The notes beneath the pieces were generated by a model, which searched no databases, was not told the origin of the DNA, and worked only from the letters and a program-made list of their open reading frames with translations. Shown here one piece after another: positions 28,874 through 63,232 of a DNA stretch of 64,000 nt (position 1 is the first letter of the stretch; each line of letters starts with the position of its first letter). The position numbers and the translations under genes were made by a program. Source of the DNA: Bispira polyomma (taxonomy: Eukaryota); the NCBI GenBank assembly GCA_965649765.1, contig OZ287750.1:69378001-69442000 (forward strand), read 5' to 3'.

Positions 28874-31589
28874 TTTAACATGTAGAGTAGTTGTCATATT
28901 TTGGCCACGGCTAAGGCGATGACACCTAGAAAAGCAGTAGAGAAAAAAAAACTACACAAGTAAAAACTAAACACGCACAAATAGAACTGGAAACTACACA
29001 CCATAATGATTCTCACTGGCGATAAAGGCTGGAGAGGCAGTACGTTCAGTAAATTCACTGGCCGACCAGTGTACTGTACAGTACTATATAAATATATTAC
29101 AATGGTGATAAAACAATATCTAACTTGCCCAAAAGAATCACATAAAGCACAGCAAATAGAAGCCATTTCCCAAGACAAATAATAAAGTACCTCCGGTAAA
29201 AAGAATGCAACACATTATGCCCATAAAAACATCATTAATAATATAAGATATATTTAGCAGAAAAGCTTGCTCCACAAAACATCGACAGGCGGTAACGTCC
29301 AACCAGAACAAATCATGCGATACCATGTAGCAATCACAACACCCATCCGGGATAATTAAATCTACTTTCACCAATAAACAATTTGACAACAGCTTGTCAA
29401 TCAACACCAAAAAAGCCCAACAGTTGGTTATTTGCAACATCAAAAACATTACTCCTTGTCAAATACTTACGTCCTTCTGTTCCCAAGACTAAACTAACAC
29501 TGACAATCTATATAAACATTCCCAACAGACAGTGAAGTGAGAAACCGCGAGCATGTTCAGTGAAGCCTGACCAAAGCCATATTATATTAAAGACATAATA
29601 ACCTCTTATAAAACACCTGGACTCATATTCTCGTATACGTATACTCAGCTCAAACTCATTTGTAACTCAAATCTGGATTTTCTATAACTCTGGATACAAT
29701 AAAAATATCCACAATCCTAGTTCTTATTTGAATGCAGTGTGAAAAGCACTGTTAAATGATTGGTGTGTAGGTTATTTCCAGGTTCAACGATTTCTTCATA
29801 GCCTGTATATTTGAGTTGAGTACGAGTTTAAGAATGAGTGTATTTCAGGTAAAATTCATGAAGGTCTCTTGTAGAATACTTTAGACATTTAATTACAAAG
29901 TCAGATTTATTTTAATACGTTCAAGATGAATAAAAAGTCTTGAACAATAACAAATCACTTAGATGAAGTCATTGCGTTTTTAGAATTTCTGTGTCAAAAT
30001 TCGTTGAGAGCCCCTACATTGAACAAATGTATTGCAGCATTTTGTATTACAGATATTATTCAAAACTTTAGGATCAAACTACAAGTACAAAGCATTTTGT
30101 TAAAATTTTTAATCTGAGACCTTCCAAGGTGAGCGTTGGCTGGAGCCCGGGGGCCATTATGTTGGATAACGGGTCTAAGGTGAACTCTTTAGGGGGTGTT
30201 GATTTATTGATATTATTCATGAAGATATATTGCTTGTTTTATCGTGATTAATGGTTAACATTATTTTATACACAACTAGAATGCACACAACTATAGAACT
30301 CTATACAATTTCACAAACTCTGTGACTGCTGTAATGACATCAAACCTTCCTTTCTCCCCCTTATATGGGCAGCATCATATTGTGAGGTTATTGAATTTCA
30401 CGATGTGTCCCTGTCAGACATGGCCACACCTCCTCTTGGTCCACAAACCCACAGGACGAGGAGGGACAGTAGTGTGTATATGACAATGTTCAGATTATTG
30501 ACTGGACGTTATGTTGTAGTTATTGTTATCTCGGAGGGCGGAGCCATAATGTACCAATTACGTATTAAGAAGATGTTTTTGGTCTGTAGACAGCACTTTC
30601 TGCCAGTTTCGTCCATTAATTTAAGTCTGTTTTTTGGCAGTTATATGTGGTTGGTACTGAAGACGAGTCAGAAGCCTTATTATATCTATTTATTTTTTTA
30701 TTTTGTTTGTAAAATAAGATTTAACCTTTGACCTCCCAATTACTGCATATTTTGTTATGTCAATTTTTCGTGGGGCCAGTCAGATTCGTAGATTTCAATA
30801 GGTATATATATATATGTGACAAAGACTAGGGTTTGCGATATATACGATATATATACACCCATACTGACAGGAAAATCTATTTCTTCTAATTTTGATTCTA
30901 ACTTGCGAGAATGCACGCCTTTTAACTTTGGTTTCGACTGCTAGACGGCGCCACACTACAGTCTTTTTTATTTTTAAGTATTAAGATACTCGGTACTAGC
31001 ATTTCTCGCCATTTTTTGTGTTGACGTCATCACTTTTCGTATATTTTGTTTGACACGAGTGGCTTGCAAATCGCTTATGTTCTCATCACTTTTGGGGCAT
31101 TTCGGTTGGGTACTCGGCTTTCAAAACTTCCTATCTTCCCAGAATATATTTTATTAACACACGAGTTGACGCAAAGTCTGCGAACTCCTATTTTCGCCTA
31201 CATTCTCATCATATTTGGGGCGTTTTATGGGGGTACTCGGCTTTCAGAACTTCCTTCCTCACTATAATATCTTTTATTTAACACACGAGGCGAGGTTTTG
31301 TCTAAAACGCCATCCGGTAGTGAGCGACATTAAAAGATTTATAGTGAAAATAATGTAACGATACGTACTTGCTTTTAAATTTCGTATCGCAATTTATTGC
31401 TTTTAGAAACTATATTGGGATATCTGAAGAAGTCTAGTATTTCCCCCTCCTGTCTGTTATAAATCGGCCACCATACAATAAATGTCTTATTACTTCAAAT
31501 TAATTTAATGTATTGGCCTAACAACATTGTACTTCCTTAAATATTATTATTGTAATTGTTTTACTTGAATCCTGGCATTGGAGGGTATC

Positions 31590-32110
31590 AGAACAGCTTC
31601 CTTTTGTGCCAACGTCAACCTACAGGAACGTGTAGTTGGCATCCACTGATCCCATCAGCACAATCGAGTGAAATTCCCCTTGTAATTATAGTACAATGAT
31701 CCACCATTCTTGGGGCACTGTTATATGTTGGCCATCAATTAACCAAAGGGTATGGGGATAATTCAACCAAGAGGCAAACTCTACTGACACAACTTTTCAT
31801 TCGGCCGAGGTCTGCAGGCATTTTCAGAATTTGTCACATTACTCTTCATATATAGCATTGCATACATCCTTCATACTCTTGGAGATGGTATTTAATGGTC
31901 AGTGTGCAGGCAGGGTCAATTGACCGGCATTTGAATTTGGATTCTTATACAATGCTGTAACTGAGTTACAAGCTCCTGGAACATTGCCAGCTTAAGCTGC
32001 ACAAACCATTTGAAGGCGGTCTGGTCCTCTCACTCCAACTCAAAGCTCATATTGACATATTGGGGTCTTCACAACAGCCAGCCTCGAACCCAAACAGTCC
32101 TGGCCATCTT
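31590..32110 (-). pseudogene. PIF/Harbinger transposase remnant (element A)
   Basis: Across stops and frameshifts: RTVWVRGWLL.RPQY, IDGQHI, GSLYYNYKG.HSIVLM..VDANY.F..VDVG..GS.SD (HARBI1-type DDE). Confidence 0.85.
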
Positions 32111-40276: not shown

Positions 40277-41614
40277 ATCATAATGTTCTTCTGCAAGTTG
40301 GTAGCAATACAACAACACTCCAAGCCCCCTTTACACTATCCCAGATGAGAAAAACTGCCTTCTCCCAGCAGCTGCTTCCACACATCCAGCAGATAATGCA
40401 GCTATCACATATGTTGCAACAGCAACAGCTACCACACACATCGCAACAGCAGCAGCTACCACATACATCGCAGCAGTAGTTATCATATACGTCGCAGCAG
40501 CAGGTATCACATGCATCGCATCAGCAGATATCAAATAAGTTGCAGCAGTATCTACCACATATGTTTCAGCAGCAGCAGCTACCATATACATTACAGCAGC
40601 AGTTAACATATATGTCGCAGCAGCAGTTATCACATATGTAGAAGCAGCCGTTATCACATACGTTGCAGTAGAAGCTATCTCAGATGTCACAGCAGCAGCT
40701 ACACCACCGAAATGCCCCTCCACAGTACTAGACATTAGGAAACTGGATTAGAGGCACCAGCACTTCTGCAACTGCTGGTTCTGCTGCTACAGCTGTGTGA
40801 CAGGTTGCTACAGGGAGCAGCATCTTTGTGTAGCGTGCCTCTGTGGGGAGAGGTCTCCAGTTGTTGTTGTGTGAAAGCCAAATGGATGTGTTTATATTGG
40901 ACATGGCCACACCCCCACGTCACAGCAAGGGGAGTAATAGCTGGGGGAGGCACCTTTACAGTGAACAGTGACATTAAGTTTTTATTTTAATTTTTTTTAT
41001 AATAAAGATGGGACAGTGAACCGTGACATTAATGTGGTTGTTTACTTCGATTTATCTGCCAAAAGCTGTAATTTGACACAATAAAGAAATGATTTCTAGA
41101 TAAAATTGTGTTGTCTACTTTCAAATTACCTAGAAATAAATTAACCACCCTGACCTCATAAACTTAAGGCTTAAAACTTGGCTTTCAAAAATACAAAGGT
41201 CAAGCTCAGTTATCTTGGATTGGTTCTGCCAGTTAATATCTTGGAATCTACCACCTCTTGGAATCTCACTCTTTACTACAAACTGAAAATGAAAGAAAAG
41301 AATAAAAATTTGTTATTATTTAAATAAAAATTGTTGGAAGAGTGAGGTACCAAAAATAAATAATTCATGAACTTAAAACTTATTTATTGATATGAAACTT
41401 TAAAACTAAATTATAATTGATGAACTTAAAACTTATTTATTGGTATGAAACTTTTTGAATTGTCACCTCATTATTGCTGAGGCTAAATTATGACACCATA
41501 AAAAATATTTGGTTAACACACAAACAAAATATTTGACACCAATAAATATCTTGACCAAAAGTACTTTAAAACGGACATAGCAATCAAAGTAAGAACAATT
41601 GTTTCAGGATGATG

Positions 41615-41635
41615 TGGGTGGCCCTGAAAAGGGCC
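41615..41635 (-). promoter_or_regulatory. Canonical histone mRNA 3' stem-loop sequence
   Basis: Minus strand AATC-GGCCCT-TTTC-AGGGCC-ACCCA, an exact fit to the metazoan consensus. No histone CDS nearby. Confidence 0.85.
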
Positions 41636-41683
41636 GATTAATTTATATGGCCCACAAAAGGGCTGATGAGATGGCAGCATACA

Positions 41684-44330
41684 TCAGACCATATGATTCT
41701 GCCAAGGCACTGAACCCACGGCTGAGTTGACATAGGTCGTCAAGTAATCTCCCTGTAATTTGGCTGCCTCTGTAGCTCGGACATGATCTTGTTGGCTCAT
41801 GTCAGACAATTCCATCCCTTTTTGAGGCCGCCTTAACTACAAAATGGTTTCCATTGTCTTCCTCATATAGTTGCCCTCCTGCATGGATGCCTGGGTAACA
41901 GGTCATTATGAGGTTGTGCACGGTACAGCAGACCAGGACTATTGGTTACTGTCTCTTGGTCCTGCCTCATCACTGTCAGGAGACAGCCAAATCTATTGTT
42001 TATCACAAACCACTTCAATGCACTAATGACCAGAGCCAAAAAATGAGCACTATGATTCAATCATCAATGAGAATTCAAACTCACCAAAAAGTTTATGGAG
42101 CTTTATAAATAAGATACTCCACCCCACAGCTGAAAATCATTGCTTCACATTTCTAAAATTTTTCATTGAAAAAATAACTAAAATTCGAGAAGGGTTTTCA
42201 ACAATGGTACGGTTCTCTTCACCATCCCCTGGCTATAAAGTTTCAAATCTGCTACATTTTAACCCACTTTCCGAGAATGATGTTCTCAAACTCATAAAAT
42301 CCAACACCATCAATTCCTGTGAATTGGATCCTATTCCTGCCACTGTTTTCACAGAATGTCTAGACATTCTCATTACTCCTATCACCAACATCTTAAATTT
42401 TTCGCTTAGGGATGGTATTTTTCCCTCTTGTTTCAAAACTGCATATGTCGCCCCCTTGCTGAAAAAATAAGGCCTTGACAAAAATGCATTAAAAAACTAT
42501 AGACTAGTCTCTAACCTCAGCTTTGTATCTAAACTTATTGAGAAAGCTGTTGCTAAAGAAATTCATGACCACATTAATAAACAAAATCTAGCTAACTGCC
42601 ACCAATCTTCCTACAGAAAATTTCACTTCACGAAGAGTGCCCTCCTTTTAATCAGTGATGACATTAACCTTGTCTTGGATCGTGATGAAACTGTAGCCCT
42701 CAACCTTCTTGATCTCTCCACAGCTTTTGATACCATCGACCATGGCTTACTCTTTGACACCCTAAAACAGTGGTTTGGTCTTAATGGTATTGTCCTTGAT
42801 TGGATCAAATCGTGCCTTGCTCTTAGACTCAAAAAATTAAATTGGGCGACCACTTTTTATCCTCTTTTAACCTACCATTTGGAGTACCCCAGGGGTCGGT
42901 TCTTGGCCCTTTACTGTTTACACTCTACACACACCCTTTCAGTGCAGTCACCAATAATCACAATCTTGAACATCACATATGTATGCTGATGACACTCAAA
43001 TCTCTCTCTCTCTCTTAACACTCAGAATGCCGGATACAACCTAGATTTACTTGCCGACTGTCTCTCCTCAGTTCAGGCATGGATGAAATACTCCAAACTA
43101 AAACTAAACCCGACAAAACTGAATTCATCCTAATTGAAAATAAGAAACACAGTGAATACTTAAGATCACTCTTCCCAATCACACTGCTGGGCAATGAGAT
43201 TTAACCTTCAGACCAGGTCAAAAACCTAGGTATCACTATCGACCCTGTTTTTTTATTTCTTCCTCACATCAACAGCATCTGCCGCTCCTGTTACTATCAC
43301 ATTCGGGACCTCAAAAGAATCAGAAATTATTTGTCACTAGATACTGCTATCACTGTGGCCAACGCTCTTGTAAGTAGCTGCCTTGACTACTGTAATTATC
43401 TTCTGTATGGAGCCAATAAGTCCCACATAAACAAGTTGCAGTCCATACAAAACTGTCTATTTAGAGTCAACTATTGTTGGGAATCTGGACTGATGTCACT
43501 CCATACCTCAAGAAACTTCACCGGCTTCCTATTCACTATGGAATCCTGTTTAAAATGCACGTAACCATTTTAAAAGCTGTCTCTCAACAGCCTCACTACC
43601 TTGCTACTAAACTCTCCCTCAGCAGCCTTAAAATGGAAAAAAGACTCTGTTTTCTCAAAAAAACCCACCAAGAGGGTTGGATGTAAAACCTTCTCGGTCG
43701 CCGCACCTATGTTATGGAACAGTCTTCCAGTTGAACTTAGATTGCTTGAACCACTTTCTGGTTTTAGGAAAAAGCCTAAAATCTATCTCTTCAGGCTCGC
43801 CTATCCATCATAGTCCTCCTCCTGGACGCTGAATCATCCATCCTTACGACCTGGTTATGTTTTTTCATTTTTCTATTATCTGATTGATTCTGATGTTGCG
43901 CCTTAGAAGATGCCTAGCATCAATAAGGTGTATTAAAAATGTACAATACAATACTGTCTCTGGGTCCTGCCCCATCAGTGTCAGGAGACAGCCAAATCTA
44001 TTGTTTATCTGAATGATTCTGCCGTGAGTGTGGTTTCATACATCACTTTCTGAGCGCAAATGCATCAACATGCAGCAACGGCAAGATATCGTAAAGTGAT
44101 GGCCTACAGACAGGTTCAATTGAACGTCACAAGAAAGTGTGTGACCTCTCAATTTGATTCTCCAAGCACTGCAATAGCTCGTACAACATTGCCGGATCAA
44201 GCTGCACAAACTCTTTAAAGGTTTTCTGGTCCTCTGTTTCCAGTTCAGCCATCAAGTGCTCATATTGACCATAATGAGGCCTTCTTAGCAGCCAGCTTTG
44301 TATCAAAACACTCCCCTATAGCTAACTTCA
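41684..44330 (-). pseudogene. Harbinger B transposase remnant (internal deletions, L2 inserted)
   Basis: N-terminus WLLRRPHYGQYEHLMAELETEDQKTFKEF; DAFAL..MKP; RFGCLL...CTVHNL; C-terminus DYLTTYVNSAVGSVPWQNHMV-TGA (41684-41686). Confidence 0.85.
42005..43951 (+). mobile_element. 5'-truncated L2/CR1-group LINE
   Basis: RT motifs ([38 protein letters not shown]), (TACAA)n tail, 58-bp flanking duplication. Confidence 0.92.
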
Positions 44331-60999: not shown

Positions 61000-61990
61000 C
61001 TATAAAAGATAAAACATTGTAATATATTGGTGATGTACTTGTGATGTAGTTTCTTACCAACTCTTGCCAGAGTAGCACTTGTAATGTATTGGTGATGTAC
61101 TTGTGATGTACTTTGTTACAGTATCCAGAGCAGCACTTGTAATATATAGGTGATGTACTTCTGATGTACTTCCTTACAGTATTTAGAGTAGCACTTATAA
61201 TGTATTAGTGATGTACTTGTGATGTACAATTTGTCACAAATTAAAATAAAAGAATTTTGGATTTCAGTTACTTGTGTTATTTCATCTTATCTTTTTTTCT
61301 AAAATTTTACCTTTGAAAACCAAGTGCTAGTTATTTGGTCTTGGGTTTGAACCCAGTAGTAGCACTTGTTAGAGCTTTAAACAAATGTACACTTAGAAGT
61401 TTTGAAAATCAAATGAAAAATTCTTTGCTTCTGGGTTTGAGTCCAGTTGATGGTGGTTGAGATAAATGTCCATTTGAAAGACAAATGACTAGTTCATTGC
61501 TCCTGGGTTTGAACCCAGTTGATAGTGGTTGAGATAAATGTCCCTTTGAAAGTCAAATGACTAGTTCTATGCTTCTGGGTGTGAACCCAAATGATGGTGG
61601 TTAAGATAAATGTCCCTTTAAAAGTCAAATGACTGTTTTTTTTTGCTCCTGGGTTTGAACCGAGTTTATGGGGTTGAGACAATGGCCAATTGAAACTTTT
61701 GAAAGTCAAATGACTAGTTCTTTGCTTCTGGGTTTGAGTCCAGTTGATGGTGGTTGAGATAAATGTCCATTTGAAAGACAAATGACTAGTTCATTGCTCC
61801 TGGGTTTGAACCCAGTTGATAGTGGTTGAGATAAATGTCCCTTTGAAAGTCAAATGACTAGTTCTATGCTCCTGGGTTTAAACCCAGTTGATGATGGTTG
61901 AGCTAAATGTCACTTTAAAAGTCAAATGACTAGTTCTTTGCTCCTGGGTTTGAACCCAGTTGACGGTGGTTAACTGCCCTTTAAAAGTTA
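61000..61990. repeat. ~58-bp x3-4 array and ~72-bp x8 array
   Basis: agtagcacttgtaatgtattggtgatgtacttgtgatgta and ctgggtttgaacccagttgatggtggttgagataaatgtc... units. Confidence 0.9.
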
Positions 61991-62072: not shown

Positions 62073-63232
62073 TTAAATCATTCTGTCCTGCCAGGAAACA
62101 GCACCTATTGGGTTGTTGTAGTATCCTTTTAGTAAGGCGCATTGAGCCTTGGCCTCTCTGTTTGCCGTGTTCCCCAGTAGTATCTCCTCCATGCAATGCT
62201 GCCCCATTTCTCCGATCCACTGGTAGCAGATTGTGCTGTGCGTCTTCTTGGTCCAACAATTCTGGGTTTTGGCCATTTGGATACCTCACTCTGCAAATGT
62301 TGTGCAAGATGCAGCAGACTGTGGTGATCAGAGTGGCTACAAATTCCCACTAAAATAGGACATCGGCTAGTCCTCACCGGGCAAAGGAGTATTTGCTGGA
62401 AGTGGGCCATTTGCACCAACATCGAGGTAGATGAACTTGTAGTCAGCACCCACCACAGCCAAAATTATAATTGATCCACTGTGAAGGTGTTTTAACAAGA
62501 GGCTTTCCATCTATGGCACCAATACAATAGGAAAAGTTCCATCTTTTCTCGAAAAGTTCTGCATTATCAGTCCAGCACTAATGTGTGTCCGAGCAGATAT
62601 AACTTCATTGAGGTTTTCCTACCAAAAAACAAGCTGGTTCAAAATCATTCTTAGTTGCAGTACCTGCTGAGTTGAATAGCCTCCCTACCAGTCTTCGGAC
62701 TGAGACAAGCATCATGGTTTTTAGAAAAAGGCTCAAAAACACATTTGTATCAGCTCGCTTTTCCACCCTGGCATGTATCTGATGGTCACGACTGAATCTC
62801 TGATCACAAACCTTCTTTCCAGATAATCACAGAGACCGTGTTGTGTGCTACACGAAAACCATAGGCCAGAGATCTATAGTCCGAACCAGTATCCAGGTAT
62901 CTCAGGGTGATGGCCACCATTAAACCTGGTTCTAGGGGAGCCCTAAAATTGACTGTTTTCCTTCACAGTCTTGGTTGTAGGCGTTGGACTAGTTCTCGGA
63001 AGATGACAGGATCAATCCTGGTAAAATTGTTATAACTGGCAGGGTCCTCAGCCTCAAACTCCTGCAATAGGTGCTCATAGAATCCAAACAGTGGTTTCCT
63101 AAGTATCCAGGGCCTGGTCCACACCTGCCTCGGCCTTCTTCTGACCATACAAGGTTCTTCCATACGTACCTGTTGAACCATCATAGCTTATTGCAGGACC
63201 TGGAATTGCTCCAATACAAAGTTAAAAGCCAT
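62073..63232 (-). pseudogene. Harbinger C transposase remnant (deletions, small L2 insert ~62620-62800)
   Basis: VWTRPWILRKPLFGFYEHLLQE, VAITLRYLDTG, WNFSYCIGAIDGK, ILHNI, YYNNPIGAVSWQDRMI*. Confidence 0.88.

Follow-up and report, generated by a model that had tools for sequence, protein, structure and literature searches.

Why should the gene of a DNA transposon end in what looks like the 3' signal of a histone mRNA? The question is raised by a PIF/Harbinger remnant (Harbinger B) in a stretch of 64,000 nucleotides of the Bispira polyomma genome (GenBank assembly GCA_965649765.1, contig OZ287750.1, positions 69,378,001 to 69,442,000 of the forward strand); this whole stretch is called the window here, and positions given without a contig refer to it. 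On the minus strand of the window the transposase frame ends with ...GSVPWQNHMV and a TGA at 41686-41684, and 48 nt 3' of the stop codon stands GGCCCTTTTCAGGGCC at 41635-41620, directly followed by ACCCA at 41619-41615. The 16 nt, GGCCCT/TTTC/AGGGCC, form a 6-bp stem with a UUUC loop. A 6-bp stem and 4-nt loop followed by ACCCA is the hallmark of the non-polyadenylated mRNAs of replication-dependent histones, which are bound by SLBP, restricted to S phase and maternally stored in oocytes. We put the probability at roughly 65% that the stem-loop in the window is what a dead, internally deleted copy retains of a genuine 3'-end signal, encoded by the element itself, through which Harbinger mRNAs receive histone-type processing, with several PIF/Harbinger lineages of this genome and a sister lineage elsewhere ending their transposase genes in a full histone-type signal and not in a poly(A) signal.

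The histone-mRNA-type stem-loop behind the window transposase is real. The Rfam Histone3 model (RF00032) gives a full-model match at 41640-41595 on the minus strand, with 37.7 bits (gathering threshold 34) and an E value of 2e-7, and this is the sole gathering-level Rfam match within the 64 kb. All features of the RF00032 consensus are present: a 6-bp GGYYYU/ARRRCC stem, a U-rich 4-nt loop, an ACCCA-like 3' flank and an A-rich 5' flank, the last being AAUAAUC (weaker) in the repeat family to which the window copy belongs and AAAA in the other stem-loop lineages. The preliminary description of this stretch had placed AATC, the stem-loop and ACCCA at 41635-41615 after the TGA at 41684-41686, in a window devoid of a histone coding sequence; the coordinates prove exact, and the window's list of open reading frames (ORFs) holds no histone ORF or coding sequence near the stem-loop. 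The ORF upstream is a DDE_Tnp_4 transposase remnant and neither a core nor a linker histone, and therefore the locus is not a histone gene. A motif of 16-21 nt is short, and this speaks for a chance match or a false positive of the model, but that explanation is effectively refuted by the E value in the window, by 2,663 exact genome matches to the pattern GGYYCTTTTMAGRRCCACC against 0 for the reversed-pattern control, and by the finding that the motif is the majority state of a whole repeat family.

That family, retrieved with the 3' end of the window copy (41500-41900) as query, comprises at least 41 copies, 73-84% identical and spread over 13 contigs, with copies matching Pfam DDE_Tnp_4 (PF13359) at E values of 4e-10 and 9e-16. 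Over the 26 copies that span the region, the majority sequence, which is a per-column line through 125 non-coding nt and not a consensus of the full-length element, consists of the stop codon, a first stem-loop GGCCCTTTTAA(TA)AGGGCC, a second stem-loop GGCCCTTTTCAGGGCC-ACCCAAA and, about 20 nt further on, TTCAAAGCTTTGTTTGTTA, a downstream block resembling that 3' of the host H1 gene. Since the canonical motif is the family majority while the copies decay, the ancestral element had the motif complete, and the weakness of the downstream element in the window copy is due to decay. The preliminary description had warned that it rested on a single decayed copy with a weak downstream element; the copy is decayed and its downstream element is weak, but the copy is one of at least 41, and the block is clear in the 26-copy majority. 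It had also named absence of the stem-loop from other copies or from a consensus as the outcome that would count against its proposal, and the family gives the opposite result. The signal is thus a property of the elements and not of the window locus alone.

Elements with intact coding capacity end in the same manner. Twenty loci chosen solely for long open DDE_Tnp_4 frames resolve into 11 members of one young family, with 85-94% amino-acid identity and uninterrupted ORFs of 398-446 residues, and 9 loci of stem-loop-less lineages. All 11 young-family genes carry AAAA-GGTCCTTTTCAGGACC-ACCCAAA, with a GGTCC/GGACC stem, 72-79 nt 3' of the stop codon, and behind it the block CAAAAACAATATCTGAGCTGTTTGTTAC, a near-composite of the flanks of the host H1 and H2A genes; Histone3 matches all 11, with 8 at or above gathering (34.1-40.5 bits). 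None of these genes has an AATAAA or ATTAAA within 225 nt of the stop codon, whereas 6 of the 9 stem-loop-less lineages have one within 26-122 nt. Here the histone-type signal stands in place of poly(A) hexamers.

The same association is found across the genome. Exact sites number 435 for GGTCC..GGACC-ACC and 344 for GGCCC..GGGCC-ACC (779 in total), all dispersed, with 0 for both reversed controls; of the 22 best DDE_Tnp_4 loci on contigs C1 and C2, 4 are followed on their own strand by an exact stem-loop at a distance of 271-277 nt, where chance would give about 1.5e-4 per locus. The best Histone3 matches outside the histone array score 42-45.6 bits and are not histone genes. Their structure is AAAA-GGCCCTTTTCAGGGCC-ACCYAAAA..CAAAAACAAT-ATCTGAGCT-TTGTTG, and at five of eight such sites Harbinger coding remnants, 36-55% identical to the young family, lie just upstream on the same strand.

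The host's own histone genes provide the reference for these signals. H1 genes are tandemly arrayed at C4:54707086-54812449, in about 62 repeats of 1,727 bp that each hold one H1 gene and a canonical stem-loop; a core-histone cluster with units of about 4.8 kb lies separately at C1:30.81-30.95 Mb, and an H2A gene was read on C3. The H1 and H2A genes both end in GGCTCTTTTCAGAGCC-ACC(T/C)A, with the downstream flanks ..CCAAAAACAATTCAAAGCTGTTTGTTAC (H1) and ..TTTATCTGAGCTATTGTTG (H2A). The Harbinger downstream block, CAAAAACAAT..CTGAGCTGTTTGTTAC, matches these flanks at equal spacing. A host SLBP gene is present.

Comparison of the host and transposon stems shows changes that preserve pairing. 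When the stems of the H1 and H2A genes are set beside those of 14 Harbinger-linked sites, variation is confined to three of the six pairs and always affects both sides (pair 1 between G-C and A-U, pairs 3 and 4 between C-G and U-A), with 0 one-sided changes, although the rows had been picked for perfect stems and '100% paired' is therefore true by construction. The covariation score is 0.283 against 0.140 for shuffled rows, 0 of 500 shuffles reach 0.283, and slid structures score 0.10 or less; each stem variant is, independently of the choice of rows, the high-copy state of its own lineage. These changes bear on the idea that the palindrome acts at the DNA level, as a site for the MADF/Myb-like protein or as a transposition hairpin, and resembles a histone signal by coincidence. 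Harbinger DNA-binding proteins are known to recognise subterminal repeats, and the motif is tandemly repeated in several lineages, both of which would fit such a role. The likeness, however, extends from the A-rich flank through the loop letters and ACCCA to a 30-nt block common to the host histone genes; the motif follows stop codons, at a distance of some 600 bp or more from the family end, and is strand-specific to each gene; and the pair-preserving changes indicate an RNA or hairpin structure and not a sequence-specific duplex site. We consider a DNA-level role very unlikely.

Homologues of the young transposase are widespread, at 45-57% identity, and one of them, from an ENA assembly, repeats the arrangement on two genes. 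At three loci of this assembly the transposase gene and a convergent MADF gene are each followed by a stem-loop and block on the gene's own sense strand: the transposase ends with two tandem AGTCCTTTTCAGGACT stem-loops followed by ACCAA..CCAAAAACAAT..AGCT, and the MADF gene, on the other strand, with GGCCCTTTTCAGGGCC-ACCAA and the same block (35.2 bits). Judged by these 3' ends, the convergent MADF gene ends likewise in some lineages. No copy of the ENA family above 68% DNA identity was found in the B. polyomma genome, and the assembly therefore represents another organism. A quick tree unites the ENA and young families in a single clade (SH-aLRT 99), whose sister group is made up of stem-loop-less mollusc homologues, so that the signal has outlived about 50% protein divergence, over which the remaining 3' untranslated region (UTR) became unalignable. 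The stem-loop trait needs two changes on this tree and may have had a single origin. The earlier proposal that strand and spacing mimic a histone gene thus gains support from the family majority, the lineage variants with intact ORFs, the H1/H2A-like block, the lack of hexamers and the two-gene ENA case.

How might such a signal act? Its parts are, in order, an A-rich flank, a 6-bp stem closed by a UUUC loop, ACCCA and, after another 8-20 nt or so, an H1/H2A-type downstream block. A stem-loop and a downstream element are enough to have heterologous transcripts processed in the histone manner by U7 and SLBP, and the most likely mechanism is therefore that 3' ends form as in histone mRNAs, independently of poly(A). 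RNA polymerase II transcripts of active copies would present the stem-loop to host SLBP, and cleavage after ACCCA by the U7 small nuclear ribonucleoprotein and CPSF73 would yield non-polyadenylated transposase mRNAs. Processing, translation and decay of the element's mRNAs would then follow those of histone mRNAs, in S phase and possibly in maternal or cleavage-stage stores, and the supply of transposase would thereby be timed to replication. We infer SLBP binding, actual processing, coupling to the cell cycle or germline, and a benefit to the element. It is in our judgement an even call that, in a PIF/Harbinger clade of at least two invertebrate genomes, the transposase and in some lineages also its MADF partner are made from non-polyadenylated, SLBP-bound, U7-cleaved mRNA, as the first non-histone and selfish clients of the pathway, with a tie to S phase and/or to maternal or cleavage-stage supply.

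The signal could also be a real 3'-end or termination signal without an S-phase purpose, serving as a compact poly(A)-independent terminator that stops convergent read-through, keeps transcript levels low or evades poly(A)-linked surveillance. The sequence evidence for histone-type processing applies to this equally, and the convergent layout would suit it, with just 0.4-1.1 kb between paired stem-loops: the list of GGCCC sites contains five plus-then-minus pairs at this distance and zero minus-then-plus pairs. Tandem doubling of the stem-loop would suit a fail-safe, and it arose independently in three lineages, namely the window family (L016 and L021, with three units each), the young family (5 of 11 genes: L078, L085, L086, L088 and L091) and the ENA family (L099, L103), with periods of about 40, 31 and 25 nt, respectively; the upstream unit usually has no downstream block, and the doubling may be selected or may reflect slippage at a hairpin. 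Established SLBP-dependent mRNAs are, however, cell-cycle regulated, so that some coupling would follow anyway, and the present evidence does not separate the two proposals. We regard a terminator free of any S-phase purpose as decidedly unlikely.

The main rival is that the signal is an inherited, functionless fragment, the 3' end of a histone gene captured once or a few times by Harbinger master copies and passed on with no role in expression. The downstream block is very close to that of the H1 gene, as capture would give, and the patchy occurrence of the motif and its lack of protection in old copies, detailed below, fit as well. A captured fragment does not account for the lack of any accompanying histone coding remnant, for the fixed place just 3' of the stop codon, or for survival across about 50% protein divergence in two lineages of two organisms when the neighbouring UTR does not survive. 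The pair-preserving stem changes also argue against it, as do the ENA convergent genes, each with its own sense-strand copy, and the lack of poly(A) hexamers in the stem-loop genes, which leaves those genes with no other 3' signal. We therefore consider a passive fragment unlikely and favor the element-encoded processing signal.

Several observations nevertheless weigh against that reading, in addition to the choice of covariation rows and the closeness of the block to that of H1. The window-family copies are, by all appearances, old, dead and decaying neutrally: the perfect 21-mer survives in 2 of 26 copies, with one mismatch in six and more decay in the others, and Histone3 matches 5 of 20 other copies at E ≤ 0.01, none at gathering. 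The window family groups on the tree with stem-loop-less lineages of the same genome (support 84, moderate, on a long branch), apart from the main stem-loop clade. Occurrence is patchy, since none of the 9 stem-loop-less lineages of this genome has a Histone3 match. The preliminary description had suggested scanning Harbinger genes of other metazoans with this model, and the outcome is divided: the ENA sister family is positive at three loci, and no match at E ≤ 1 was found in nine named-species homologues (Mercenaria, Pinctada, two Mytilus, Littorina, Patella, two sea urchins and Portunus), each a single arbitrary gene copy. At many young-family loci a MADF-domain match lies, by its coordinates, on the strand opposite to the transposase stem-loop and 2-2.6 kb past it, and comparison of the exact-site lists with the MADF coordinates gave no exact stem-loop after the young-family MADF gene. 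Three sequencing runs of one study, whose kind is not recorded, were compared with L085 and gave thousands of contigs of 110-150 nt spread evenly over the ORF and its flanks, with no ends, a pattern that looks like genomic DNA and is uninformative on transcripts. Finally, the candidates for a host U7 small nuclear RNA (Rfam RF00066, best 29-31 bits, below gathering) were rejected, as four share a flanking repeat and no pairing was seen between their 5' ends and the downstream block.

Those four U7-like candidates, L053-L056 (C1:73052658, C9:22468440, C2:92328237 and C3:11751946; 24-31 bits), each have an Sm-like site and a 3' hairpin. Because they sit in common flanking repeat sequence, these candidates may represent a repeat family derived from U7 instead of the functional U7 gene.

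The copy in the window is a dead, internally deleted element with the following parts, listed in the direction of the transposase gene:

44127 to 44306, minus strand: N-terminal remnant of the Harbinger B transposase (ORF piece; tblastn match at 44145-44303 to residues 3-55 of the intact protein L081, 47% identity).
42005 to 43951, plus strand: reverse-transcriptase-bearing insertion that splits the dead transposase gene and lies outside the signal (plus-strand ORFs; weak RVT_1 match at 42675-42989).
41687 to 42004, minus strand: C-terminal transposase remnant (tblastn match at 41820-41960 to residues 271-320 of L082; last ORF piece 41684-41815).
41684 to 41686, minus strand: TGA stop codon of the transposase frame (sequence and ORF list).
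41649 to 41664, minus strand: decayed upstream stem-loop, GGCCCTTTTAA(TA)AGGGCC in the family majority (alignment of 26-30 copies).
41620 to 41635, minus strand: histone-type stem-loop with 6-bp stem and UUUC loop (RF00032, 37.7 bits; exact motif located).
41615 to 41619, minus strand: ACCCA (sequence and Rfam match), with cleavage expected after the last A by analogy with established histone pre-mRNA processing.
41576 to 41614, minus strand: decayed block like a histone downstream element (family majority ...CAGAACATTTGTTCAAAGCTTTGTTTGTTATG, H1 gene ...CAATTCAAAGCTGTTTGTTAC; the window copy differs at several positions).
41007 to 41575, minus strand: rest of the family's 3' part (from coverage and an alignment of 10-15 copies; homology stops near 41007-41030, a provisional terminus).

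The remnants are 37-47% identical to intact Harbinger proteins of the same genome, and most of the DDE domain is deleted. The insertion, about 1.95 kb long, lies between 58-bp direct repeats of transposase coding sequence (41947-42004 and 43952-44009, 95% alike), which are unusually long for a target-site duplication. Family homology runs about 600 bp beyond the stem-loop, to about 41007-41030, and the stem-loop is therefore internal to the element. PIF/Harbinger elements are marked by terminal inverted repeats and a 3-bp (TAA/TTA) target-site duplication; for the motif at the 3' limit, no inverted-repeat partner was found in the window, nor in any of eight 7-kb copies. A search by tblastn with MADF C-termini, which are low-complexity tails, gave no second gene in the window copy or the family flanks. 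Within the 3' part, a conserved block at 41257-41289 (minus strand), with equivalents in L040-L051, contains a splice-acceptor-like TTTTCAG followed by GTTGTGGTGAAGAGTGAGATTCCAAG... and then a short open stretch.

Two other Harbinger remnants lie in the window. Harbinger A (31584-32095, minus strand) retains only the N-terminal residues 1-179, 39-42% identical to L081/L082, and because its 3' end is missing it is uninformative on the 3' signal. Harbinger C (62076-63124, minus strand) has no stem-loop after its stop codon, as had been described, and belongs to a different, L081-like lineage, one of the stem-loop-less lineages; about three tandem repeats of some 60 nt (..CAACTGGGTTCAAACCCAGGAGCA..) stand directly 3' of its stop codon, at 61780-61990 on the minus strand.

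At the other end of the young-family elements, the first ~250 nt of loci L072-L091, upstream of the ORF, contain 4-6 tandem repeats of about 20 nt (ATAGGATCGAACGTATTGRC) and a GACCAATAGGATC box, which could be promoter or protein-binding repeats. At three loci, by coordinates alone, a young-family GGTCC stem-loop faces a convergent GGCCC stem-loop 6.5-7.2 kb away, a regular spacing that suggests a larger composite element or a nested partner:

C2:31641393, plus strand, GGTCC stem-loop, with C2:31648569, minus strand, convergent GGCCC stem-loop.
C2:101899502, plus strand, GGTCC stem-loop, with C2:101906714, minus strand, convergent GGCCC stem-loop.
C1:50844540, minus strand, GGTCC stem-loop, with C1:50838058, plus strand, convergent GGCCC stem-loop.

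Together, these results suggest that a DNA transposon has adopted a 3'-end signal otherwise known solely from replication-dependent histone genes. No description of histone-type 3' ends in transposons was found in the literature searched, a scope that leaves most subscription journals outside. If the proposal is true, these elements would provide a natural non-histone substrate of SLBP and U7, and a cut-and-paste element would have a novel means of matching its transposase supply to replication, the phase in which such transposition can increase the number of copies, or to early embryos. In such genomes, Rfam Histone3 matches by the hundred mark transposons and not histone genes, which matters for annotation, and for study of the SLBP and U7 requirements the lineages offer an independent, evolving collection of stem-loops and downstream elements.

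Set beside known systems, the Harbinger signal is most like the 3' end of replication-dependent histone mRNAs (RF00032 with a histone downstream element, acted on by SLBP and the U7 ribonucleoprotein), with which it shares the stem and loop consensus, ACCCA, the short distance from the stop codon, the sense strand and, with the host's H1 and H2A genes, the downstream block. It differs in following a DDE_Tnp_4 transposase or MADF ORF and not a histone, in being dispersed in hundreds of copies where histone units form arrays, in preferring GGCCC, GGTCC and AGTCC stems over the GGCTC of the host histones, and in often being tandemly doubled. PIF/Harbinger transposons reportedly (Kapitonov and Jurka 2004; Sinzelle et al. 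2008) consist of a DDE_Tnp_4 transposase together with a Myb/SANT/MADF-like DNA-binding protein, and the present elements are likewise multi-copy, dispersed and equipped with DDE_Tnp_4, with a convergent second MADF gene in relatives. To our knowledge described Harbingers use ordinary polyadenylation, as other lineages of this same genome appear to do (AATAAA within 26-122 nt), in contrast to the histone-type signals of the elements described here. Polyadenylated histone variants and engineered stem-loop mRNAs likewise use the stem-loop outside the canonical histone mRNA context, but they are histone genes or man-made, whereas the Harbinger case is a natural selfish element that combines the stem-loop with a downstream element and has no poly(A) hexamer nearby.

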